Assembly (NCBI GenBank): GCA_047495785.1 | Contig: JBLDXI010000007.1 | Span: 496,001 to 560,000, forward strand | Source of the DNA: Lepidodermella squamata | Taxonomy: Eukaryota > Animalia > Gastrotricha | DNA: 64,000 bases | Direction: 5' to 3' | Shown: positions 15,406 through 31,925 of the stretch, one piece after another | Layout of the letters: each line of letters opens with the position of its first letter | How positions within the stretch are numbered: the first letter of the stretch is position 1 | Position numbers and translations under genes: made by a program | The notes under the pieces: generated by a model | The model's input: only the letters and a program-made list of their open reading frames with translations | Told to the model about the DNA's origin: nothing | The model's database searches: none

Positions 15406-18400
15406 ATGCGGTTGTTCCTGCTGCAACTGGCACTCTTGCTGTGGAAATGCTGGCGAACTCAGTGGCAGAGAAAGGTGAATCAATAACTTTAATAAATAAC
15501 AAGAAATCTTATAATTATTATTTTATAGATTCGACTAATTGTGATAATTCTATCACCAATTGTTGTTTTCTCTGTCATTTTTTACCTGAGATCGCTCTTT
15601 CCCAAAGAATCTGATAAATCGAACCGGCAGAGTGAATGTAAGAAAAATCATATTCCCAATATCCTTTTAAATTATATATTTTTCTAGGCCGGTATGATGA
15701 AATGCCTCTTCCATCGGCTGGACCAGCTTTTCTAGAATATCTTGCAAGTCGAACTTCATGGAATTTACAATGTGATAAAACTGAAAAGTATGCATTTCCC
15801 CAGCCTCAAAGAAATATCGTTAAATCATCAATTTCAGGACAACAACACCTCCTTATGCTTCGGTTGCCGCGGCGTGTTACGCATTACACGTCATGGTCGG
15901 GAAACCTTTCAGTTATTACCCGAACACCTCAGAACCAATCCGGAATATGATGTCTGAAATCGAAGACGACATCCGATTGGTAGCGCTAACCATGACATGC
16001 CCGATTCAATCGTGGCGAAAAATATTCCGAGGATTCGCAGAACGTGACGAGATGCTGAACGCGACGGCTTGGATCGACTCGATAGCTATCGAATTTCTAG
16101 ATATCGACCCGAAAAACGCGTCACTGCCCAGCTTGGTTAAATATTCAATCCGCTGTGGATCATCAAAATTAGACCTAGATTTGAATGGACCAACGTCTAG
16201 GGTTAAGGATGCTCCGCTGTCTGTAGGCCCGAAGAACCAAGTTCACTACTTCACCAGTTTTTTCATCTACCTGCAAGACATGGTCGACAAAGCGATAATA
16301 AAGGCGCAGGTTAATAGCGTCGACTCTTCGGTGACTCAACCAATTTTTGCCGGTTTCGGTACGATCATGCAGCCGTTTCCGTACCCTTGCCATGAAAACA
16401 ACTACTTTCTTGTCCAACTCGCCGGTTATTTAACGCTGTTCTTAGTACTCGGTTGGATGTTACCGGTAGCATTTTTCGCTAAAACGGTCATTTCGGAAAA
16501 GGAACGGCGCCTTCGCGCTGTCGCCAACTGCATGGGAGTCACCCCTGGTATCAACCTATTAAGCTGGTTCACGTTCTGGTTCGCGATTATGTTGATAGCT
16601 ATCACGTGTTTACTGATCGCAATCAAAGCCGGCGACATTTTCCGGTTCGCCTCGGTGGCAGTTCTCATCGCATTTTTCTGCGCCTACTCCGCAGCAAGTA
16701 TTTCATTCTCCTTCTTCATCGCGTCGTTCTTCAACAAGGCGAGCGTCGCGGCGTTGGTCGTAGTTATCGCGCATTTCATGACATTCCTAATACACTTCGG
16801 ATTGGCGAATTCAAACGGAGGCGAAGCGCTGCAACTCGGTGATATGCTACCTGCTTCGTTACTGCCTAATATCGCGCTAGGTTTCGGCTGCGCGATTTTC
16901 GCCAGCTGGGAACGAATTTCCGTCGAGTTGAATTATTCGAATTTGAACACACCCGTCGGAGCTGAACCTGCCGATCGTTACACCATGTTGTACAACATTT
17001 TAATGCTGATTTTCGATGCAACCCTGTACTTTTTCCTCACCTGGTACATCGACAACGTTCGACCCGGCGAATTCGGTGTTCCTCAGTCGTGGGCTTTCAT
17101 GTTGAAACGATCCTATTGGTCTGATAAAAGCTATTCCCTGATTGACGAAGATGAAAATGGCGACAGTGAAATGACTGGGATTTCAACGATAAATTCGAAC
17201 TTCGAGCTCGAACCACGCCACCTTAAAATCGGCTGTTCACTCAAGCGAATCAGCAAATTATTCAACTACGGCTGTTGGCCAGGCGACAGCTCGACTAAAA
17301 TTGCTGTAGATGATTTGTCGCTAAACATTTTCGAACATCAAATAACGGCGTTACTAGGCCACAATGGTGCAGGTAAAACTACAACCATGTCGATGATAAC
17401 TGGACTTTTGACACCCTCATCCGGTGAGGTTAAAATCTACGGGCGAAATGTGGCTAGTGAAATGTCAGCTGTTCGGAATATTATCGGTTTCTGCCCGCAG
17501 CATAACGTTCTCTACGACGATTTAACCGTAGCCGAACACTTGTGGTTCTACGCCCGGATTCGAGGCGGGTCACACCTGAGTAACGCCGAGCTGCGAAACA
17601 ACATCGATGAAATGCTGAAAGATACAAATTTAACCGAGAAGCGGGACGAGTTGTCGAAATTCCTGTCCGGTGGTATGAAGCGACGGCTGTCGATTGCTAC
17701 CGCTTTCATCGGTGGGGCGAAGTGCGTTGTCCTAGATGAACCTACTGCCGGGGTGGATCCGTTCGCCCGCCGGGCGATTTGGGATTTGCTAACGAAATTT
17801 CGCCGCGATAGAACCATCATTTTGTCAACACATCACATGGACGAAGCCGAAATTCTCGGCGACCGCATTGCTATAATCTCAAATGGCCGCTTGTTAACTG
17901 TAAGTCTATCCTTTCAAAATGAAGTTCATGATTTATTATTACGGTTCTATGTCAATTGAGCAAACGAAAATTGAGCAACGAAAATAGAGCAAGGGCTTTT
18001 GAGCAACGATATTAGAGCAAACGAAATTAGAGCAAAACGACTTCTGAGCAAACGAAATTAGAGCAAAACGACACGAGAGCAAATTTTATTTAAAATAAAC
18101 AACAGCTGCAATTAATTATTAAATTTGCTCTCGTGTCGTTTTGCTCTAATCTCGTTTTGCTCAAAAGTCGTTTTGCTCTAATTTCGTTTGCTCTAATATC
18201 GTTGCTCAAAAGCCCTTGCTCTATTTTCGTTGCTCAATTTTCGTTTGCTCAATTGACATAGAACCATTATTACCTATACTTGATTTAAAATTTTTGATAA
18301 AAATTATTTTTTTATTCTGTTATTTTTTTAATTTAAAATTTAAAATTAATTTTAGGATAAATTAAATTAAATTTAAATTTAAAAATTTCCAATCGAAATT

Positions 18401-21400
18401 AAAATTTATTTGATTTGAAATTCATTTGAAAATTGATTAATTTGATTAATTTTTTTTTAATTTTAGTGTGGCTCGCCCATTTTCCTCAAACAAACCCGCG
18501 GCGATGGTTATCGGCTAACAATTGTTCCCGACTCAAAATTATCGCAAACATCACCTGAAATTATCGACAATTTCGTTAAAAAAGAGCTGCAGCTTAATGA
18601 CCCCACAGCCAATAAGAACAAATCAACCAGTGAACTGCACTATCAGCTCAACTACGATTATCTCGAACGACTTCCAGAATTTTTCAAGGAATTAGAAATT
18701 AGGAAAAACGAGTTGGGCGTGTCATCCTACGGCATTTCCGACTGCAGTTTGGAGGAGGTTTTCATTAAAATAACCGACGAAGATGAAGCGAGTAGAACGC
18801 AGAATCTCTATCAGAACAGCGCGGAATCTGACGGTAAACTCGACGCCTTCGAGCGGCTACCGGGTTTCTGGTTAACATTACAGCAATCGCATGGAATAAT
18901 CGCGAAACGATTCAATCGCATGCGTCGCAACTACAAGGGCTTTCTTATTGAACTTCTACTCCCGGTGCTGGTTGTTATCGCAGGTGTCGGGATTGTTAAA
19001 TTAGCGGCGCCGAACGAGCTCGGCCAAGTTGCTCAACCGCTGGAACTGACGCCGTGGCTGCTTCAACCCGGTCCGTTTTCGAGCTTCGAGAGTAAACTGT
19101 ACACATTTATCAGCAAGTCGAACAACGGCCAGTTCACTTATTTGGAGGAAAAACTAGCTGCAGCTGCGTTCAATGCAAGCCTAGTTGGAACTAAATGCAT
19201 GTCGAACGGCTATTCGGTGAAAAGCTATCCTTGCCCTGTTGGATTGAAAACTGGTGAAGCTGAAAATAAGGTGAAGTACAAAAAACGAACTTGCTGGTGC
19301 ACGACCGAAGATATTCAACGATGCTCGGTGGACAACCAAAGCGAGCCAATGCCGCCATCTCAAACCATCGGAACTGGAGATGACGTCATCGATTTGACTG
19401 GAATCGACGTATCTGAATATATCTTAGGTAAATTGTTTCCAATTTTCCAAGATTTTTAAGACCTTTATAATCTTTCTACAGATCAATTTTCGTTGTTGAG
19501 AGACAATTTTTACGGTGGCTTATCGTTCGTTGAGGAGGGTTTATTTTTCCCTCGGGAGAACATCAAAATTTGGTTCAATAATAAGGGATGGGTTTCAAGT
19601 GTCGCCTACAACAATTACGCCAACAATTTACTGCTGAGACTCGCCCTCAACCTACCTAACGCGTCCGACTACGGCATTGTCACTTACAACCACCCGTTAC
19701 CATACTCAGATTTCGACAAGGAAGTTCTGCTCCTCACAAAATACGACCAATTTCCATTCGCTCAGCTGACTCATCTATTGCTAATGTTATTCGCCCTCAG
19801 CTTCGTACCAGCTGGGTTTGTCATGTTCCTAGTTGAGGACCGAGTTTCAGAATCTAAACACGTCCAACTTGTCAGCGGTTTGAAGCCCTACGTCTACTGG
19901 TTGGCTAACTATCTATGGGACTGCGTTTACTGCCTGGTCCCAGCCGGGTTTTGCATAGCAATTTACGCTATTTTCAACGTAAATTACTACACATCAGTCG
20001 ATTCCATCCAAGTTTTCATCCTCCTAACGATTTTCTATGGCATTTCAATTGTTCCAATGCTTTATCCATTGTCACTTTTCATCCAGTCGCCTAGTACTGC
20101 CTTTGTTGTAGCCGCATGTGGTAACATTTTAATTGGAAGTGCAACGACTGTGTTGACGTCAGTGCTTGATCTGATGGAAGTTCGCCATGTAGCAGGGGCT
20201 GCTTCAGCTAGAAACAGGATGAAAGCCGTTTTCTTTCTCTTCCCGCAGTATTGCTACGGGCGTGGGTTATACGACCTTTCTGCTAGTTATCAAAACTACA
20301 CGTTGAAGTTAGCGGAAAGTCACGACCCGTTCAAATTCGACGTCTGCGGGCAGTATCTCCTAGCCCAGGCTATTCATGCGATTTTCTGGGTTTCCATCAA
20401 TATTGTACTCGCCTATCATCTCACGAGGTTCAAAGCAGTCTATCAACGCACTCTTAGCGTTTTCGTCAGATCAAAGAATAGCTTCACTCGGCTTATATTC
20501 AGGCAAAAAGCCGACGGTGAGAGTTACGGCATTTTAGAGAATGTAGAGTCAAATTTAGACTCGGACGTAGTCGCTGAACAAATTCGCGTATTATCCCCTG
20601 ATTTTCCTAGCGAAAACTATTCATTAGCCGTCAAAGAGTTGGTCAAAACTTTCGATACAACCCGCGGCCAGTTGACGGCTGTAGACCGGTTGACGTTCGG
20701 CGTTCAGCCTGGCGAGTGTTTCGGCCTGCTCGGCGTGAATGGTGCTGGAAAATCGACGACTTTCAACATGTTAACCGGCCTGCTCGGGCCGACGAGTGGT
20801 ACCGCGTTGGTGCAAAACTGTGATATATTAAGCTCGCGAAACGCCGCGAATAAACTCATCGGCTACTGTCCGCAGTTCGACTGCATCACGCCGCTGCTTT
20901 CCGGCCGCGAAAATCTCGAATTTTTCGCGAGAATTCGCGGCACCCCAGAGCGGTTTGTCCGGCGAGTTGCCGAGTTCAATCTACGCCGGCTTGGCCTAAC
21001 CCCACTCGCCGATAAACCCTCAATGTCGTACTCCGGCGGCAATAAACGGAAGCTATCTGTCGCAATCGCGCTATCTGGCGAGCCGCCTTTGGTGCTGCTT
21101 GACGAGCCTACAGCAGGGGTCGACCCAGGCGCGAGGCGGTACCTATGGCGCGCGATTAAGGCGGCTCTTTCCCGCGGTCAATCCGTGATTCTAACCACCC
21201 ATTCAATGGACGAATGTGAGTCGTTGAGTAGCCGTCTAGCTATCATGGTTAACGGCCAACTCCGCTGCTTGGGCAGCCCGCAGCATCTGAAGCAGCGTTT
21301 TGGCGATGGTTACTTGCTTACCCTTCGTTTCCGTCACGTGAATGACGGTTACGGGGTTAACCTCGCCAGGTTACAAGATCAAGCTCAGAAGGCGTTTGCT

Positions 21401-21697
21401 GACCGACTGCCGGATAGCCAGTTTAAATTCAAGGAAAGCCAGGATGCAGTTGCGACGTATTCCATGGCGTCGACTGTAGATTTAGCCCAGTTGTTTGGGC
21501 TGTTGACAAATCGCAGCTTCATCGCTGGGCTGCGCGTCGGTGATTTGTCGCTTATGCAAACGTCGCTCGACACAGTTTTCATCAACTTCGCGAATGGACA
21601 GCGGCCCGATGATGGCGACACTAGCAGCAATAGCAGTTTCTCGGATGTAATGGAACCGGTTATCATATCGAGTAACAGATACTTGGACGTTGAATAA
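15406..21697 (+). CDS. ABCA: ABC transporter subfamily A, full transporter, multi-exon
   Basis: N-terminal LQLALLLWKCWR; EKERRL; NBD1 LLGHNGAGKTT/LSGGMKRRL/DEPTAGVDP; NBD2 LLGVNGAGKST/YSGGNKRKL; GSPQHLKQRFG. Confidence 0.95.
17943..18265. mobile_element. Foldback-type MITE in an ABCA intron, ~145 bp TIRs built of GAGCAA subrepeats, 8-bp TSD ATTATTAC
   Basis: Starts ggttctatgtcaattgagcaa and ends ttgctcaattgacatagaacc; attattac at 17935-17942 and 18266-18273. Confidence 0.92.
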
Positions 21698-22528: not shown

Positions 22529-25269
22529 TCACAGGCTCAAGTTGCTAGAAGGCGTGCTCAGAGAGCTCAGCGATGACTCATTAGACTGCGACTTGGAGAA
22601 GGCGTGTTTCTTCGGTTTATTGCCACCACGCCGCCAATTGCCTGATTCCGGCGCGCCGTCGAAAACAGACTCCATATTTGTATTGTTGTCAATGCTAGTC
22701 GCTACGAAAAGCGACGGCGCCGTGGTTAAATCTTCAGCTAGGCCGTTACTGTTTGCCGTGTCAATCTGTTGAATCGTTGCCCCGTTCTTTAACGTGTGCT
22801 CGCTTCGACTCGAGGCGGACGGCAACTTCTCGCGAACAAATCGCATGAGTTTGATCGGCAGCAGGGATGATTGCGTCCGGCTGGTCATAAAATGACTGCT
22901 GTGATCTCGCTGGCAGTGGTTGAACTGCGATGCCAGATCAGAGGAACCCTCCCTGTGGCGGTTTTTCAAGCAGCAAATGAATATGCGAAGAAATGACCGG
23001 CGAAATTTAGGAACGGCTATTAGATAGACGATAGGGACCAACAATGCGCATGAATAAGTTAGCCAGAGGCAGATTCTCAAGGCTAATGAAGGAAAGTTCG
23101 GCAAGAAAGCTCCTGTATGAAACAATTTTTTAATAGAGAAAATTACAAAACTTTTCATGACCTACTGGCTACGACGGCGATTTGAAGAGGGGCCAAACTT
23201 AGTCCGGTAACGATTGAAACGACTCTGAGGCCATCCGTAATTTGTTTCTCGACTTTCAGCTTGCTCCACAACAATTTTTCTGAAATTTTATCAAAACTTG
23301 AATACAAAAACCACCGCCAATGGTTATAACTATACCTTTTTTGATGAGATCGTCAGCTCCGAGCAGATCGTCGTCGAGGTATTTGAAAGCTTCTTTCTTC
23401 TTTTTCTTTCCGCGGCTATCAGCGGCGTCCAGACTTGCGGCGTCAGTTTCGCTCATTTTAAAATGAAGGCCCGAGCAAACTTCAACGTCGATAACTTTAG
23501 CATCGCGATACTTTTGACGAATCGTACTGAAAAAAATGACAAATAGACGTTAATTAATTTCACTTTTTTAGTCATTCATTTGGTAAAACTTGATCATCAT
23601 TTTCGGAAATTTTCGGAACTCAATGGAAAATAAGTTGGACTTCTACAGCGTGTCCCAACTATTTTTAATTTGGCAACTTTTTGTTGGAAATTCAGCTGAG
23701 TTGTTTAAATTGAACCTACCCAGAGAATATTCCATATTTTATCCGCGATTCAACGGAAGAAATAAAAAATTCACCGGAGAATTCCCGGAAAATCTTGGTG
23801 GTAACTGTTTCGGTAATTTCGTTATTCTACCCGATTTTACCGAATCCCCCGACTTTTTTAATCAAGCGACATACTTATGATTACTATTCTCGTGATTTTA
23901 AATTTTTCCAACATCTTTCTGGCTATGAAATGTGACGTCGTCTCTCGTTTTAGAGTATCTGAACTCTTTTCGGTGCATTTTCTTTGCTTGCGTTACTTAT
24001 GGGACACGCTGCATAAAAATTCCTTTACCGATCTTGAAACCCCTGAACTCTTTGGAGGTTCTAAAAGAAATCGAACAGTGCCTTTTTAATATTTCTTTTT
24101 AAGATCACATTGACGGTAACTAGGGGTAAATTTGAACAAAACCAAGCTGTTCGAATGAAAAAATCATTATTTGCTGGAAAATTTCAGAGCTGAAAAGGGA
24201 CAAAGTTATTGATTCCTCATTCGCCCGTACATTTTGAGAAATCGTCTACTTTTACCTGTTTTGTCAGTTTAAAATGTGTTTGTCCAACTTAAGATAATTA
24301 GCGGGTAATTAAGAACACCCAGCATATTCAACAGACTCATATGGGTTTGAAGATTTTCCCTGTAAATATTAAAGCCCACGCCCAAGTCCAAAATTGCCCG
24401 ATTTTTTACCTCAACTCTCAATTAGAAGTCACCATCAGAATTTAGCCTCCTTCGATTTCAGAGAGAGTAGAGAGTAAAGGTAGGAGAAAGCAAGGATTTT
24501 AAGGGTTCTAAAACAAAATCCAGAGTCACAAAATTTTTGGATAAGGATTATGATAGATAAAAAATTTATTGAGCTATTTCGAAACTTACTCAGCTTCTTC
24601 GAAGCTTTTAGCATTGAAAGAATGAATGAAGGCCGCAATGACAGCACAAGGCACCGCGAAGCTGGCAATGATGCGGAACATGACGAAGCCATGCTCGTCA
24701 TGGTAATCACACCTGTGATCGCCATCGACCGGCAGCCAAGTTCGCCAGCCCAGAACCGCACTGACTGCCGCAACAGCGCCAATCACCCAGACTACGGCAC
24801 ATTTCCGCAGGGCCTCCCATAAATTTTCGACCTTACTATGCGACATTAGTTTCGATAAAGCTGATCTTTGATCAATTGCGATAGCAGCTAGGCCACTTAG
24901 TAAAACAGCTGTTATTGCTACGTTCGACATTTCGTAGGCTCGGCAAAGGTCGTAGCCGAACACCCACCGGCCGTCGAGCGCGTCGATGCTGATAGCCAGC
25001 GGCATGGTAAACAGCGACACAACGGCGCAAGATACGATAAGGTGGCTGATGAGAACTTTCGTGATTACCGGCACTTTGTGCGCGAGAAGGATAGAAACAA
25101 CGGCGATGATGCAAACAAGAAGGGTTAGACCGGCCAGGGCGGATAGCGGCGCTGCAACGGCGATTGCCGTTGATTTATTCGCCTCGAAATACTGCTGGGC
25201 CAGGCAGAAGTGCGACGACTCGTTCGTGCACGACGAAGTCATGTTGATAACTAGACTTGACGATGACAT
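22529..25269 (-). CDS. Divergent class A (rhodopsin-like, amine-receptor-like) GPCR, 4 exons
   Basis: TM2 FTMPL, ECL1 GRWVFGYDLC, TM3 IAIDQR (DRY position), TM5 SFAVP, TM7 WLTYSCALLVPIVY, helix 8 PKFRRSF..IFICC; in-frame splicing through 23168-23526. Confidence 0.85.
23646..24011. mobile_element. Tc1/mariner-like MITE in GPCR intron 1
   Basis: TIR ta|cagcgtgtccca ... tgggacacgctg|ca (TA TSD with one mismatch). Confidence 0.7.
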
Positions 25270-26799
25270 GTTCTCAAAAATCGCAGCCTACATCGCTAAG
25301 TTAAAAAATTGTGTTTTTAAATTATTTGTTGTGAGTGCAATTCTAGCACTAAAGGAAGTTGAGGCATCCGGTCACGCAGTGTTAAATTTCATTAGGCGGC
25401 GACACTTGCTACTGCAAAAAACTGTTAATTGGAATTGATCGCAGCGAAAATCATACAATTTGGGAAAAAATAATTGAAAAATCAATAAGTGCAATCTACG
25501 CATGCAGAATATACAGACTTCATATACCAAAATTCGTTATACTACAGAGTAATGTGGCGGAGGAATAGTCTGAGCTAATAATTTCCTGGTGGATGATGCA
25601 TTCTCGCATCTGGCTGAGAAAAAAACAATATATCGTAGAAAATCGATTTGTGAGGTCATTCACACTCGTGTTTTTACCTCGTGCTAATGTGTGCGGCTTT
25701 TCGTTGGAGAGAAAAAAAAACAGTCACTAGATGCCATCAAAAAGACGACGATAGAAGACAAGATAAGTAAGTATGCCAGGCTGCCTATAATACTCGCAAT
25801 AAGGAAGGTCACATGAAAAAATGCGCACATGCCCCAGGTAAACACGCATGGGATGTGAGAGTAGATTGCTTCTGACAGCAGCCGCTTCAGATGTCAGTCG
25901 GAAATAAGCCGTGGCCACTACGTTCATGTCATATTACCTGACGCGGATACATTTGTTTCAGACAACCGCGTTATAATCTAGGAACAGACAAACTATTTCG
26001 TTTTTTTTAAAGCCAATGTTTCAACAAAAGTAATAATATTTTGCAATGAATCGTTTCATAGCTGTTAAGATCAAGGCGTGAAGATAAAAGCCTGAGAGGG
26101 TGGGCGAAAAACCTCGAAGCAATGGGGGAAATGGGGATTCAGAACCGGCTCATAAAACATATGAATATAACCAGCGAAAAAACACGCACGAGTCTGCAGA
26201 GCGAAACGAAATAGAGAGAGAATGGAGAGAGAGGGGCACATATGTTTCTTGCAGCTGTATTCACAAAAAAATACTCGATCCGAAATGCCTGATGATAATG
26301 AGTGTAGTAATAAAATTCCGCCCTGCTCTCCAGCGCTATGTGATGAGAAATAAAATGCGGCCTATATAGAAAAGTGTCTCCAGTAAAAGTCAAGCGGGAA
26401 TTAATTTCGGTACAATAGAAAATAGAAAGCAAAGTACTTTTTTAGTAGTTCAGCGAAAATCTCATTAATTCTTTATTTCGGACAAGCTATGGGGAAAATA
26501 GCAATAATATTCGGTTTCCTCTTTCACTAAAAGGGCGTTCCGTAAATTGCGAAAACCGGCCTGTCTGTCCAAAACTCGGTAACAAAAATGACACAGATAA
26601 TTCCTAAATTTGCGTAAAAACCTACGTTAATAAATATATTTAAAATATTACTTTATTCAGTCAGGAAATTTATGAACTAAATATTGCTTTAAGATTGTCT
26701 CACGGTCCTTTTTCTAAATAGCATCACCGCATGTTATTCCATTCACAATTTCTGGTTATTAAAATAAGAATTAAATTTAGCGAGTCATTGCGGTCGATT

Positions 26800-29468
26800 T
26801 CAGAAATTGAACAAAAATCGCCGTAAATAGCCTCGAACTTGGCTTCGAGGCGGCGATGCGCCGTTTGTAGCGACCGGTCGACGGTTCGGATGTTGGGGCG
26901 GGCGTTGAGCTTTACGAGCATGGTTCATTACAGTCTTCTCCAGATGCATGCTATCGCTGTCTTGATCAATCGACCAAATCATCACGCCACCTAAACACTG
27001 ATTTTTGGCGTAGTCGATTTTCAGCTTCAGCGTCTCGTGGTCGTCGAAGCCTATCCACTGGTTGTCATTCCACGCCAAGACTTTAGTACCGGATGGGACG
27101 TCCAAGCGTGGCTTCAATGCCTTGTCATTGCCCAACATTTCCGAAATTTCGTGATAGCTCAACGTCCCGGGGTTAGCGGTGCATTTCCCGGCTTTACCCG
27201 GGCCAGAAAACGGACAGCCGGTCAAACTGCATGACCGAGAGGCTAGCGTGAAAGTTCGCGCGTAAAAGGCAAGGCCGAGGTTCAACTTCTCAGGCCTAAC
27301 ACCAGCTCTGTAATAAATTTCAATCGCAGCGTCGATTTCAGTCAAGTTAGTATGGCTGAGGACGAAGGGAGCTCGAGGAGCGTCCCAAACGCCGTGCATA
27401 TCATAGGTCATTACGTTGACCCAATCGCAGATTTCACTGATAGCCAACAGGTCGAAGTGACGCAAGTACCAGTAAGAAGCCGGAGCGGCGACGGAAAGGA
27501 GTAAGCTGTCGCCGAACTGGCGGCGAAGTTCTTTCAAGAGGAGGACGTAATTTTCCTTATCCTCCCGCTCTCCGCCACGCTCGTCCGCAACAGGGTATCT
27601 AGATTGAAGGTGACATAAAAAGAATATTTTAAGGAAGATCAACTTACTCCCAATCAACGTCAAGACCATCAAAGCCCAAAGCATTGAGCGTTGCGACTAC
27701 CGAGCTGGCGAATTCCTCGCGATTATCTCGAGATGACGTCATTTGGGAGAAGACTTTATTCGTCGGCTCGTCGTTGAAGGCCCAGCCACCTACAGCTAAC
27801 ATGACCTTCAACTTTGAATTGCGCTGTTTCAACTGAACCAGCCGTTGAGCCAGCGTTTTATCGCTCTCAGTCATCGTCAAACGATTTTCGAAAATTGTCG
27901 CGAATGAGAAAATGATGTGGGTGTAAGCGTCTGGGTTTAGGTCCTCCGGCGCGATCAAGCCGCAGTGGCGAACAGTCGGGTCCAATGACCAACCTGCGTA
28001 GTACCCTACGACGCGTTTCAGCGGTTGAGTAGCGCTGTTCGGGCAAACAGGGCGCGCTGGTTTTTCGCAGTTCGATTGGCACCCGAGGCGGCAGAATTCG
28101 GGTGTAGTCCCGCAGTAGCCAAACTGGCTACAGCAGATATTGAGAGGGCAATAGCGGTTCTCCTCAGCGGCGAATCGACCACATTCAGTCTTCGTCATGG
28201 AGTTGGCAGACTTGCCACAGTTCGAGAGGCAACCCTCGCCGCAAAACTCGGCGCCTCGTCCGCAAAATCCCCATTTAGAGCAACACGAACCTGAGAAAAA
28301 AATTAGAATTTTCCCGAAAATGTTAGGTCATTGACTTTACCATCTGAGCAGGGCTTCGTAGCCGAGCACATTTGTTCTTCTTTTTTCAAAGTTTTCGACT
28401 TCTGACCAGTAGGAACTCGACGGTCATCGTCGTAGCAATTCGATAGACAGCCGCTGCCACAAAACTCGTCTCCCATACCGCAGTAGCCCCACTTTGAGCA
28501 ACAAGATCCGTCAGCGCACGGTTTCGTCGCGCTGCACATAGTTTCCGGTTGACTTTTGCTTCTCGACGGCATCATCAACTGGTTGCTGTCAGCGTTACAA
28601 TTTGACAGGCAACCTGCGCCGCAGAAATCTGGCGTCGTTCCGCAAAATCCCCATTTTGAGCAGCAAGCATTGCCGTCGCATAACTTTGTTTTCGAACATT
28701 CGGGTTCGAAATCATCGATGTCGATATTCCCGCAGTTTGATTGGCAACCAGCGCCGCAGAACGCATCTCCCAGTCCGCAGAAGCCATACTTCGAGCAGCA
28801 GAAGCCGTTTTTGCATGGTTCAGCTTTCGAACACTGAAGTAAAGAAACAGGGCGTTGAGTTGAGCTTGCAGCGGTCTGCTCGTCGTTTGTTGCTCCTTGT
28901 TTACAATTGGACAGGCAGCCCCGGCCGCAAAATTCTTTCCCGATACCGCAATAACCCTAAAAATGACGCGTAACTGCGATCGATAGCGGGCAAATTTTAA
29001 TAAAATACCCATTTCGAACAACAAGATCCTATCAAGATAGAAAACCTGGGTTAGATAAGAGTTCGAGGGAATACTTTGATTCATACCATCAGAACATGGC
29101 CGCGTCTCCGAACACTCCTTTTCGGGTTTGTCCAGGCGTTTGCCGCAGTTTGAGAGGCAGCCTTCTCCACAATGCGATTCCTCGTAGCCGCAGTAACCTA
29201 AATTAAATGCAATAAACCGAAATCAACTGGGTCACTATAATGCGTTGGTGAAATGAGCGGCGGAATTATTACTTTGACCCCGTTTTAAAACCCGCAGTAA
29301 TCACTTCTGTGATTCATTTGAATAGAAGGTGAAGTGTTTATTACCCCATTTGCTGCAACAGCTACCGTCAGAGCAAGGTTTCGTGATGGAGCACTCCAAA
29401 GCTAGGACACGGCCGGCAAAAAATGCCAGAAAAACAGTCGCCCGGAACAAGCGGGATAGATCATTCAT
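26800..29468 (-). CDS. Secreted GH18 chitinase with 7 N-terminal hevein (ChtBD1/CBM18) domains, fungal subgroup-C-like; 6 exons
   Basis: Signal peptide from ATG 29468; repeats C....PC..G.CCSKWG(F/Y)CG....C..GCLSNC; CPLNICCSQFGYCGTTPEFC; catalytic FDGLDVDWE|YP; ASYWYLRHFD; HTNLTEI; LGGVMIWSIDQD. Confidence 0.93.
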
Positions 29469-29905
29469 TTTTCGAAATTTCAGCCAGATATCGTGGGTGA
29501 AAAACGTAGTATTATTGGAGCTTGTTTACAAGAAGGCTTGTTACAAGAATTGAAATTTCAAGCTCGTGCTCAACTGAAATCGAAACACGCGATCTAAATT
29601 TACGTAATTCGTCAGCCCTGTTTTCACGCACGACATCAAGAAACCTTAAAATCGTGCTCATCGGCGATTATTTGAAGCGCTAAAATCACTGGAGTGTGTG
29701 ATTGAGAACGATTTTCGATTTCTATTACACTGTTTTATTATTTTAAACATCTTTTTTTAATGTGAAAATGTGGTTAAACAATAAGTTTACTATCTGAGTT
29801 AACATTGAGGTTTGATTCTTCATCAATCGCAGGTACAGACAGGTGATAGCCAAAAGGCCTGGAAATACAAACTGAAAGTTGAAAGTTGAAGCAAGAATCC
29901 TAAGC

Positions 29906-31925
29906 TTACTTTTTATCGTTACTCCGTTTTCGATAAGTTTTTCTGGCGGTGTAAGTCGGCATTTTCTGAGGTATGATAAAGCGCTCCAATTGTCGATTTC
30001 CCGCGCCGATTCCAATGACTTCAAGGTGCCGGCGCTTTCGGCAGTGACGGTGCAGGACGCGGACAATAATCGATAGCGCCAAAATAGCGACAACCCCGAC
30101 GAAAACCGCGGCTAAAATGCGGTTCGTACTCGCGTTGAAGAAGTCGGAAGCGCGCTGATCTGTCGCATTAAAAGCCGAAGCTGTTCAATAATGTTGGACA
30201 CATTTCAATTACCACTACATCTACGAAAATGCGTTTTTGACTATTACATAAACATGTCGCGTTGTCTATGGCTGACAAGACTAAATTTTCCGGGCAACTG
30301 CATTCGAAAGAGCCATTAGAATTGGTGCAAAAATGAGAACAAATCATTGTTTCGGCGCATTCGTCCACATCTATTTGCGAAAAATTAAGCAAATACATTT
30401 TAAAAAGAAGCCCCGGAACCTACCAACACAACTTTTGCCATCCAAAGCCAACTTATATCCTATTGAACAGGCGCAGATATATGATCCAGGGGTATTGACA
30501 CAGTCTTCTTGGCATTGCGCTGTTCTATCAAGGCACTCGTCGATATCTGATGAGATTAAATTATGAAATGAAGACTTGAGTAAACAGATTTTACCTGAGC
30601 ACGTTTGATTGGCGTGTTTATAACCACGCTGACACGTTTTACAAGTGTAAGATCCAAAGGTATTTTGACAAATTTGCTCGCAATTCGCCGATCCATCATC
30701 GCACTCGTTGATATCTAATAGAAAATAATTACGAATATTTTTCATTTTTTTCAGGAAAACTTTACCTGAGCAAGTGATGTTGTTGTCAAGTAGCTGGAAG
30801 CCTTGCCTACACGAGCAGAAGAAGGAGCCTGGGGTGTTGAAGCAATAGCCTAAATTCACGTCGCATTTCGCCAACTTTTCGCCACACTCGTCGATATCTT
30901 CGCATTTAGATCCATCGCCCGCTAATCGATACCCACGCGGGCATTCGCACCTGTACGAGCCTTCGGTGTTAACACACCTATCGGCACATAACGGCTTATC
31001 GCTAGGCAAGGAGCATTCGTCAATGTCCTTGCACGTTTTACCATCTTCGAGCAACGAAAAGCCTGGCAAACATTCGCAACGGAACGATCCAGGTAGGTTG
31101 ATGCAAATTTGGCTGCAATTCGACGCGGATTCACATTCGTTGAAATCGTCACACGTTCTCGCCTCGTTGCCAGCGAAATAACCGGCCGGGCAGATGCATT
31201 CGAAAGATCCCTTGTAATTGACGCATTTTCCAGGTGAGCAAAGTGACGAATTTTTGTAACACTCATTCTCATCTGCATGAAAATTAATTTCAACTTAGAT
31301 TTTCAAAATTGGGTATCGAGTACCTAGGCAAGTATGCTGGTCTTTGGCTAACACGAAACCACTTGGACACGAACATTTGTAGGAACCAGGTGTGTTGATG
31401 CAAATTCCTTGGCAAGGTGGATGTTGGCTCTCCGGATCGGTACATTCATTAATCTCTGAGGAAAGGTAAAAAATGTGAAAAATTGTTGGATAAAACATCG
31501 GACCAACCTTCACATTTTCCAGTCATTGACGAATTCTTGTAACCCGGGCAGCAGCTCCGAATGTCGACGTACCTCTTTGGAGCCGGTGTACATTTCCAAT
31601 CACAGACAGATCTGAAATTCGAAGTTACAATATATTTCGATTGGGAGATGTGATAAAAAAAAATCACCTTTCTTGTTCCCCACATCCAACCTCCTTTTTG
31701 AGATGTTTGCATAACTCGTCGCCCTTCAGGTTTTTGCATACCTGATAGCAAATATCAGGGTCGCGAACTAATTGAGAATCGACAATTTCACAACTGCAGA
31801 AAAATGATAATAAATCTGAAATGTAGACAATCAATGACTTACCTCGACGAAACGCCTCGGAATAAAGTAAAAAATGTTAAGGTGAGGCCGAACAGCGAAT
31901 AACTCCCAGTGACTTTCGGTGTCAT
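29906..31925 (-). CDS. Type I membrane protein with Cys-rich N-domain and 8 calcium-binding EGF repeats; paralogue of 10399-12136
   Basis: Signal MTPKVTGSYSLFGLTLTFFTLFRGVSS; N-domain ending CCPGY...KC; repeated D(I/V)(D/N)EC...C.NT.GS(Y/F).C; TM ILAAVFVGVVAILALSIIV then RHCRKRR. Confidence 0.88.

Follow-up and report, generated by a model that had tools for sequence, protein, structure and literature searches.

A hevein-rich chitinase of fungal type in the gastrotrich Lepidodermella squamata, and its possible acquisition by ancient horizontal transfer

The gene and its genomic setting

The window analysed here, a 64-kb stretch of the Lepidodermella squamata genome, carries on its minus strand (29468..26800) an intact six-exon gene for a predicted secreted chitinase of 770 aa. 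The hand-built gene model starts with an ATG at 29468, ends with a TGA at 26802-26800, and consists of exons at 29468-29345, 29197-29087, 29009..29028, 28956-28341, 28290-27648 and 27598-26800, the third of which is a microexon of 20 nt inside the second hevein module. The coding sequence has 2313 nt with zero internal stops, and the product has about 82-84.5 kDa and 63 cysteines. Five introns of host style with GT-AG borders had been proposed in the original prediction, and all five (147, 58, 52, 50 and 49 nt) indeed have these borders and are spliced out in contigs of a public RNA run from 2015 (X2). This includes the microexon, of whose 20 nt 17 letters are found between both sides of the joint in an RNA contig, and the gene model is therefore confirmed. 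The 3' part of the gene is also covered by a second, RNA-like run (X3), and the RNA contigs of two runs stop at 26639 and 26644, which gives a 3' UTR of about 160 nt (26639..26799). From there down to about 25600, no RNA contig covers the sequence.

The flanks of the chitinase gene contain animal genes only, as had been noted from the sequence alone and is now supported by Pfam. Downstream and on the same strand lies a rhodopsin-type GPCR gene (7tm_1; first large exon at 24583..25269), an EGF gene with an EGF_CA array (30.4-31.1 kb) is situated directly upstream, and ABCA-type transporter exons (15.9-21.7 kb) and an ANF_receptor domain (35.4-36.8 kb) are found further away. A DNA contig of run X1 (29092-30347) joins the 5' part of the chitinase gene to the neighbouring EGF gene. 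The GC3 of the gene is 0.575, compared with 0.41-0.59 in the neighbours, and its introns of 49-147 nt compare with 48-67 nt in the neighbouring gene. Two haplotypes of the locus are present, and eight of the nine listed coding differences between haplotypes or strains are synonymous, the remaining one being a K>R exchange; such few coding variants fit purifying selection. The chitinase gene is a genuine, expressed and spliced nuclear gene of the host.

An ortholog exists in a second species, on the metagenome contigs L037 and L038 (ENA ERZ27333047 and ERZ23486764). It is 55-57% identical to the L. squamata chitinase, is its reciprocal best match in the genome, and has five heveins, compared with seven in L. 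squamata. One intron site, located in hevein 2, is common to both genes and has the same phase. The ortholog is also followed by a GPCR gene, whose best genome-wide match is the GPCR of the window (E 2.6e-19, versus 2.8e-6 for the next match). The ortholog, the shared intron and the shared GPCR together demonstrate that the gene is older than the split of the two diverged species, and that it is neither a contamination nor a chimera. When metagenome contigs were scanned once with the aligned pair of orthologs, no further ortholog appeared, and the best matches were only 38-45% identical.

Domain architecture and the host's other chitin genes

The protein begins with a predicted signal peptide (aa 1 to about 24; 29397..29468), a hydrophobic stretch that was judged by eye; the metagenome ortholog has a classic one. 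The following region (28067..29396), which is interrupted by introns 1-4, encodes seven hevein/CBM18 modules (H1-H7), recognizable as 8-Cys units at aa 25-59, 69-103, 126-160, 171-205, 225-259, 281-315 and 326-365. As membership in the hevein family was defined by the 8-Cys signature together with a score over the Pfam gathering threshold, the assignment is clear: PF00187 (Chitin_bind_1) matches exon 4 in four stretches (E 2.8e-30, 104.7 bits) and exon 5 with an E-value of 5e-20 (71.9 bits). H7 is of a longer hevein type that immediately precedes GH18 across the whole clade discussed below, and a module of this type is also present in the aligned rotifer and springtail relatives and in a Basidiobolus sequence. 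Only 16 aa separate the end of H7 from the start of the catalytic domain, and CBM18 is thus placed directly N-terminal of GH18, an arrangement characteristic of subgroup C.

The GH18 catalytic domain (aa 382-718; 26959..28018) is split by the 49-nt intron 5, and of the profile PF00704 (Glyco_hydro_18), exon 5 matches positions 1-113 (E 1.8e-25) and exon 6 positions 117-317 (E 2e-44). Intron 5 (27647-27599) interrupts the codon of the catalytic Glu within the catalytic motif DGLDVDWE (27598..27670). The four signature motifs of GH18 are all intact, namely DGLDVDWE, LAVGGW (SxGG-like), MTYDMHG (MxYD) and MIWSIDQD (WxxDxD), and the seven tandem heveins with an intact catalytic motif, which had been recognized at first inspection, therefore hold. 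The motifs ASYWYL, HTNLTEI and CPFSG..G.CT are found as well. That the protein ends soon after the catalytic domain was also correctly seen: it is followed only by a basic, Pro-rich tail of 52 aa (26803..26958) with no further domain. Pfam gave no LysM match in the chitinase, and no CBM14 match was obtained in the gene or in the entire window.

With seven modules, the array exceeds that of any of 286 relatives examined, which have four at most, and that of the metagenome ortholog with its five. The suggestion that the array had been amplified is supported by this comparison, but the amplification is old: a recent tandem amplification was considered and had to be rejected, because no two repeats exceed 70% identity at the DNA level. 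Tandem 8-Cys hevein modules (PF00187) are also known from wheat germ agglutinin and the Urtica agglutinin, which in contrast to the gastrotrich protein have no catalytic domain. In such plant lectins, tandem hevein modules give avidity for chitin.

Animal GH18 chitinases had been expected to carry CBM14, and the host itself follows this rule. In the searched genome assembly (121.2 Mb, 151 contigs), 12 other GH18 domains, which were stitched from the genome, group with crinoid and chiton chitinases on the metazoan side of the tree, and CBM14 modules lie beside several of them, including those on contigs C17 and C13, where they are placed between or beside the GH18 domains. CBM18 is found in just two genes of the genome, as opposed to at least 72 CBM14 matches.

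Phylogenetic placement and comparison with known systems

The nearest named proteins of the GH18 domain are all fungal (45-52% identity) and come from Basidiobolus, Xylariales, Fusarium, Histoplasma (a "class V chitinase") and Colletotrichum, with annotations that include "killer toxin subunits alpha/beta", whereas insect multi-domain chitinases reach about 33-36%. Exon 6 was also used in a second, word-based protein search for short or fragmentary orthologs, which gave nothing above 51% identity, and the named matches were all Ascomycota. Look-alikes in the ESM Atlas again indicated a fungal (Ascomycota) affinity. In the PDB, the closest solved structures are those of metazoan GH18 chitinases from insects and human (E about 1e-33 to 1e-46).

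In a maximum-likelihood tree, the chitinase falls into a 100/99 clade, with a stem of 0.74, together with fungal proteins that are named class V or killer-toxin-like and presumably represent subgroup C, and within this clade it groups with its ortholog (P0004) at 100/94. The C-like and the metazoan GH18 clades are separated at 100/99 in the free tree, and the AU test rejects a tree in which the chitinase joins the metazoan GH18 clade (p = 0.000125). The fungal type of the GH18 domain, as originally predicted, is thus borne out by the nearest named relatives, the clade and the AU test. The backbone of the C-like clade is a polytomy, with the chitinase and its ortholog at the base, and for this reason the chitinase is not nested in any fungal subclade. 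There is no supported fungal sister of the gastrotrich pair in the tree, and ten added near matches did not change the state of the base. The clade also includes the ichthyosporean Sphaeroforma, bdelloid rotifers and a springtail; in the free tree, the rotifer/springtail and Sphaeroforma groups stand together beside chytrids and Blastocladiomycota and are separate from the gastrotrich pair. Constraining all animal sequences to a single clade is not rejected (p-AU 0.10), and neither is a holozoan clade (p-AU 0.13). The original prediction had named nesting in a metazoan or holozoan clade as its refutation: a place in the metazoan GH18 clade is rejected, and for a holozoan clade the backbone and the constraint test together mean that such a nesting is neither established nor excluded. 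Another member of the basal polytomy, P0243, is a chitinase of viral or eukaryotic origin on a contig with dense open reading frames, a Met-tRNA synthetase and Arm repeats, for which Pfam gave nothing decisive. Judged from sequence comparison, the catalytic domain is not of the metazoan type but most probably of the subgroup-C/killer-toxin-like type of fungi, and it lies in a polytomy within its clade.

How does the gastrotrich chitinase compare with known systems? With fungal chitinases of presumed subgroup C (C-I/C-II) it shares the 100/99 clade, a long CBM18 module of the "ECG...CPL..CCS" type just before GH18, and the stretch DGLDVDWEYP, which corresponds to the subgroup-C consensus DGxDxDWEYP (PMC13348850). 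Fungal subgroup-C enzymes, however, are large (140-170 kDa), with LysM modules and an extended C-terminal part (PMC8042737), whereas the gastrotrich chitinase has 770 aa with a 52-aa tail, no LysM, seven CBM18 modules and an intron-bearing animal gene, and is not nested in C-I or C-II within the polytomy. In case of the alpha subunit of the Kluyveromyces lactis zymocin, the combination of a chitin-binding module with GH18 is similar, and the literature assigns it to the same broad subgroup. Of the proposed link to zymocin, only the shared chitinase subgroup stands, as the gastrotrich chitinase lacks the beta part of zymocin and of plasmid- or cluster-encoded killer toxins, and neither a nearby gamma-toxin or immunity gene nor the setting of a virus-like linear plasmid was found at its locus. 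Metazoan GH18 proteins (chitotriosidase, AMCase, insect groups I-IV) belong to the same family and have the same catalytic motif, but they carry CBM14 in place of CBM18 and form a different clade.

The most similar animal cases are the CBM18-GH18 genes of Adineta vaga, Rotaria and Orchesella, which are also intron-bearing animal nuclear genes of the same clade with CBM18 preceding GH18. Unlike the gastrotrich pair, they form their own 100/99 clade, have two CBM18 modules each, and in case of the rotifers end in a C-terminal nuclease-like domain (PF13930) that the gastrotrich chitinase does not have. Relative to Adineta and Orchesella, the chitinase and its ortholog also have in common one gain and one loss of 3 residues. 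Shared introns were considered as a sign of common animal ancestry, but the chitinase has no intron position in common with the Adineta or Orchesella genes. The sole near-coincidence, an Orchesella intron at a distance of 1 nt from intron 5 of the chitinase (at DWE/YP), is read as independent, because the closest ortholog lacks that intron.

Origin and possible function

The chitinase probably came from outside animals and has long been established in the gastrotrich lineage. We favour, with reasonable though clearly limited confidence, that this expressed host gene for a secreted CBM18-GH18 chitinase was acquired by an ancient horizontal transfer, with a fungus or an element associated with fungi as the source. 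This reading is preferred because the distribution is patchy: among the named animal matches, only Adineta, Rotaria and Orchesella carry CBM18 together with GH18. The original idea of a fungus-to-animal transfer agrees with this distribution and with the integration into the host genome, but the tree shows no nesting in a supported fungal subclade, and we infer direction and source accordingly. In the common ancestor of L. squamata and its diverged relative, the gene already resided beside the GPCR gene and had the one intron that both share; later on, the lineage probably gained introns, and it differs from the relative by two heveins (7 versus 5). The acquisition would be independent of those in bdelloid rotifers and springtails.

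What alternatives exist for such a transfer? The main one, which we regard as considerably less probable but as a serious competitor, is vertical retention: a CBM18-GH18 chitinase of this clade could have been present in the opisthokont ancestor and could have been kept in fungi, ichthyosporeans and a few animals (gastrotrichs, rotifers, springtails), while being lost in most animals. As the constraints to an all-animal or a holozoan clade are not rejected, a descent from the opisthokont ancestor with many losses is possible, and the same CBM18-GH18 architecture in Sphaeroforma, the basal position of the gastrotrich pair outside fungal subclades and the age of the gene in its lineage agree with it. 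However, it requires many independent losses, the free tree sets the rotifer/springtail and Sphaeroforma groups apart from the gastrotrich pair, the three animal groups have no intron in common, and rotifers and springtails are known for reported foreign genes; in the Orchesella genome paper, chitinases are among the candidates for horizontal transfer (PMC4987106). A more far-reaching version of the transfer hypothesis, which we consider rather improbable, holds that three groups of minute animals from soil and fresh water, the gastrotrichs, bdelloids and springtails, each captured a killer-toxin chitinase module independently, possibly via cytoplasmic virus-like elements or giant viruses, and that it became an antifungal weapon, by the seven-hevein array in gastrotrichs (the largest in the sample) or by the nuclease fusion in rotifers.

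As to function, secretion, enzymatic activity and biological role are suggested by the domain architecture. The seven disulfide-knotted CBM18 modules may together anchor the protein multivalently to chitin surfaces, in analogy to multi-hevein lectins, and the class-V GH18 domain would cut beta-1,4-GlcNAc bonds by the substrate-assisted retaining mechanism of its family. The likeliest uses would be antifungal defence or, in the gut, the breakdown of food organisms with chitin walls (fungi, some algae and protists). It appears unlikely that the protein is a non-hydrolytic chitin sensor or lectin for immune recognition or for organising the animal's own chitin matrix. GH18 proteins have repeatedly turned into chi-lectins in animals, and seven lectin-type modules make up most of the N-terminal half, but chi-lectins typically lack the catalytic Glu, whereas DxxDxDxE with its Glu and the other three motifs (SxGG-like, MxYD, WxxDxD) are kept in both orthologs. 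[quoted passage not shown] A contaminant fungal DNA or an amplification chimera, conceivable as the published L. squamata assembly derives from MDA-amplified DNA from which 370 non-metazoan contigs were removed (PMC11660948), is effectively refuted by the short host-style introns spliced in independent RNA, the host-like composition, the link to the EGF gene in DNA of run X1, the two haplotypes, and the chitinase-GPCR linkage, which recurs in another species on a contig assembled independently.

Our literature search yielded no publication that describes foreign or fungal-type genes in gastrotrichs. The gene is a clean case, as it is expressed and spliced, has conserved synteny in two species, and has coding variants that fit purifying selection, and it demonstrates that a phylum which has received little study possesses, beside a normal animal GH18-CBM14 set, a type of chitinase that is elsewhere typical of fungi. 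Taken with its counterparts in rotifers and springtails, it raises the question of whether microscopic detritus and microbe feeders have repeatedly recruited fungal cell-wall weapons, or whether an old opisthokont chitinase family has been overlooked. The seven-hevein array may furthermore be regarded as a natural experiment in the engineering of chitin-binding avidity.

Structure and expression of the gene

Six-frame translation of 26.7-29.5 kb, together with an inspection of splice sites, yields a single minus-strand gene of six exons, namely exon 1 (29468-29345), exon 2 (29197-29087), exon 3 (29028-29009, a microexon of 20 nt that falls within hevein 2 and is also seen in RNA contigs), exon 4 (28956-28341), exon 5 (28290-27648) and exon 6 (27598-26800). 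The five introns (147, 58, 52, 50 and 49 nt) are all of the GT..AG type, those of 58 and 52 nt border the microexon, and introns 2 and 4 have identical sites and phases within heveins 2 and 6. The CDS of 2313 nt encodes 770 aa (84.5 kDa, 63 Cys) that comprise a hydrophobic, signal-like N-terminus, seven 8-cysteine hevein units (H1-H7, aa 25-365), a GH18 domain (aa 382-718) and a basic, Pro-rich C-terminal tail of 52 aa. Pfam confirmed Chitin_bind_1 (PF00187) and matched Glyco_hydro_18 at full length, divided between exons 5 and 6, and the GH18 motifs DGLDVDWE(YP) (catalytic), LAVGGW, MTYD and MIWSIDQD are unbroken. Wherever gene model, Pfam and motif reading permit a check, the anatomy described in the original prediction is right.

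The gene is genuine, belongs to the host and is transcribed. When contigs of a public RNA or RNA-like run from 2015 are compared with 25.2-31.1 kb, they skip exactly the five predicted introns, and at the joint 28957-29085 they contain 17 letters of the 20-nt microexon between both sides. These contigs and those of a similar run from 2014 both stop at about 26640, which gives the 3' UTR a length of about 160 nt, and none covers the intergenic 25.6-26.6 kb. Splicing of the adjacent EGF gene, with introns of 48-67 nt, is seen in these runs as well. Contigs of a public DNA run, which may be the source data of the assembly, cover all bins with two haplotypes, and one of them (29092-30347) connects the chitinase gene's 5' part with the EGF gene. 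Eight of the nine coding differences listed are synonymous, the other being K>R, and the GC3 of 0.575 lies within the range of the neighbours (0.41-0.59). These are of animal type according to Pfam (7tm_1 GPCR, EGF_CA array, ABCA-type exons, ANF_receptor, a G-patch/ankyrin gene). Two long open exons on the plus strand (15893-21697), located upstream of the GPCR-chitinase pair, contain ABC2_membrane_3 and ABC_tran domains and represent either a full transporter of the ABCA type or a pair of half transporters.

Phylogenetic position and origin

When 1.84 billion representatives were searched exhaustively with exon 6 by HMMER, the metagenome-encoded protein P0004 was the top match and the only one at its level (56% identity), followed by numerous matches at 45-52% identity, of which many have 1000-1700 aa. 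All named matches are fungal (Basidiobolus, Astrocystis, Hypoxylon, Nemania, Fusarium, Histoplasma "class V chitinase", Colletotrichum), insect-type multi-domain chitinases have 33-36% identity to exon 6, and the closest solved structures, insect and human chitinases, score much lower. A word-based search with P0004 revealed further CBM18+GH18 carriers in chytrids, Catenaria, Sphaeroforma arctica, Adineta vaga, Rotaria and the springtail Orchesella. In Adineta vaga (L119, CP075492.1) and on a 201-kb contig (L125, ENA ERZ26165376; three tandem copies), CBM18-GH18 is fused to a weak match to PF13930 (non-specific endonuclease), and such a rotifer-type fusion of a chitin-docking enzyme with a nuclease recalls killer-toxin logic.

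The ML tree (LG+C20+F+G4 PMSF, 71 rows, 343 columns; a 97-row quick tree minus 26 long or redundant rows) contained the spliced gastrotrich GH18, P0004, 12 paralog domains of the same genome, named fungal, animal and protist sequences, and selected unnamed near matches. The 12 paralog domains cluster with crinoid and chiton chitinases (100/97) within the metazoan side. The gastrotrich gene and P0004 form a pair (100/94) inside a 51-row clade (100/99, stem 0.74) that holds all fungal proteins related to subgroup-C and killer-toxin chitinases, the Sphaeroforma group, and a rotifer and springtail clade (100/99). An AU test rejected the placement of the pair in the metazoan-type clade (p = 0.000125). 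The chitinase is firmly of fungal and not of animal type, and the descriptive claims on the gene are likewise firm. The backbone of the 51-row clade is a polytomy, and ten extra near matches did not change the tree. With groupings chosen post hoc from the tree, neither one clade of all animal CBM18-type genes (p = 0.10) nor one that also includes the Sphaeroforma group (p = 0.13) was rejected.

Two further records are worth mentioning. P0259 (EukProt, CBM18+GH18) from the streptophyte alga Mesotaenium endlicherianum is sister to the whole clade of subgroup-C-like chitinases, with a long branch and an odd amino-acid composition, and could be a contamination or another transfer. P0243 (L121/L122; ENA ERZ23491220, ERZ23491423), a GH18 without CBM18, lies in the basal polytomy; its contig is dense in ORFs, most of which could not be annotated, and also has tandem duplicates, a Met-tRNA synthetase in split form and a protein with Arm repeats; it may belong either to a giant virus or to a compact eukaryote.

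Of the fungus-to-animal transfer that had been predicted, the fungal type is supported, but the transfer itself is not demonstrated by the tree. Transfer is the more economical reading, since the gene occurs in only few animal lineages, and in ones with reported foreign genes; chitinases are among the HGT candidates of the Orchesella genome (PMC4987106). An old opisthokont chitinase family with many losses and no transfer is a serious alternative; the same restricted distribution speaks against it, and we consider it less probable than transfer. For a transfer, virus-like linear plasmids would be a conceivable vehicle; these plasmids, themselves ancient in fungi, carry killer-toxin chitinases (C-II, consensus DGxDxDWEYP) according to the literature (PMC13348850). 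Neither foreign genes in Gastrotricha nor animal CBM18-GH18 genes are the subject of any paper that we found.

Orthologue and age of the gene

P0004, P0151 and P0152 are encoded on the metagenome contigs L037 and L038 (ENA ERZ27333047, ERZ23486764). The orthologue rebuilt from L038 has 662 aa with a signal peptide, five heveins and GH18, and its sole intron (49 nt) matches gastrotrich intron 2 in site and phase (Gly of "..DG|xCC"). The best match of P0004 in the gastrotrich genome is the gastrotrich gene (55-57% identity), and the best genome-wide match of the GPCR downstream of the orthologue on L037 is the GPCR downstream of the gastrotrich gene (E 2.6e-19, 28% identity; runner-up E 2.8e-6), with four collinear tblastx segments consistent with this synteny. 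Gene, position and one intron were therefore in place before two small-intron animals, now well diverged, separated. A contaminant or chimera is ruled out by the orthologue, the shared intron site and the conserved GPCR linkage. The orthologue's start codon is preceded, at a distance of about 140 nt, by a tRNA-Trp gene (L038 137-209, L037 164-236); no tRNA was found near the gastrotrich gene at 20-34 kb.

The Adineta and Orchesella genes have six and two introns, and none coincides with a gastrotrich site; the single near-coincidence is an Orchesella intron 1 nt off gastrotrich intron 5, which the closest orthologue lacks. Gastrotrich gene and orthologue share two 3-residue length differences relative to Adineta and Orchesella, one gain and one loss.

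Hevein array, other host chitinases and function

The predicted amplification of the array agrees with seven modules as compared to at most four hevein motifs in each of the 286 relatives fetched by then, but the array is old, as DNA identity among the repeats is at most 70% (H5/H6 86% in protein). In the assembly (121,234,032 bases, 151 contigs), CBM18 is limited to the chitinase and one gene on contig C3 (C3:4476062-4476151, locus L036, about 1522), which encodes a secreted protein with one hevein similar to the H1-H6 type, possibly borrowed from the chitinase gene. There are about a dozen other GH18 domains, including pairs on C13 with CBM14 modules immediately upstream and, on C17, a tandem run of five that is interspersed with CBM14 modules. 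The latter run (C17:1097133-1110445), in which five metazoan-type GH18, each with intact DGLDxDWE, alternate with six CBM14 modules, is either one multi-domain "chitinase 10"-like gene or a tandem gene array.

Beyond its core, subgroup C is defined by size, C-terminal extension and LysM (PMC8042737). Unlike these large chitinases, the gastrotrich gene has none of the three, and it also lacks the toxin partner of killer-toxin systems. Judged from its anatomy, the protein is probably an endo- or exo-chitinase that is secreted and binds chitin multivalently, and present data agree equally with a digestive or an antifungal role in the animal.
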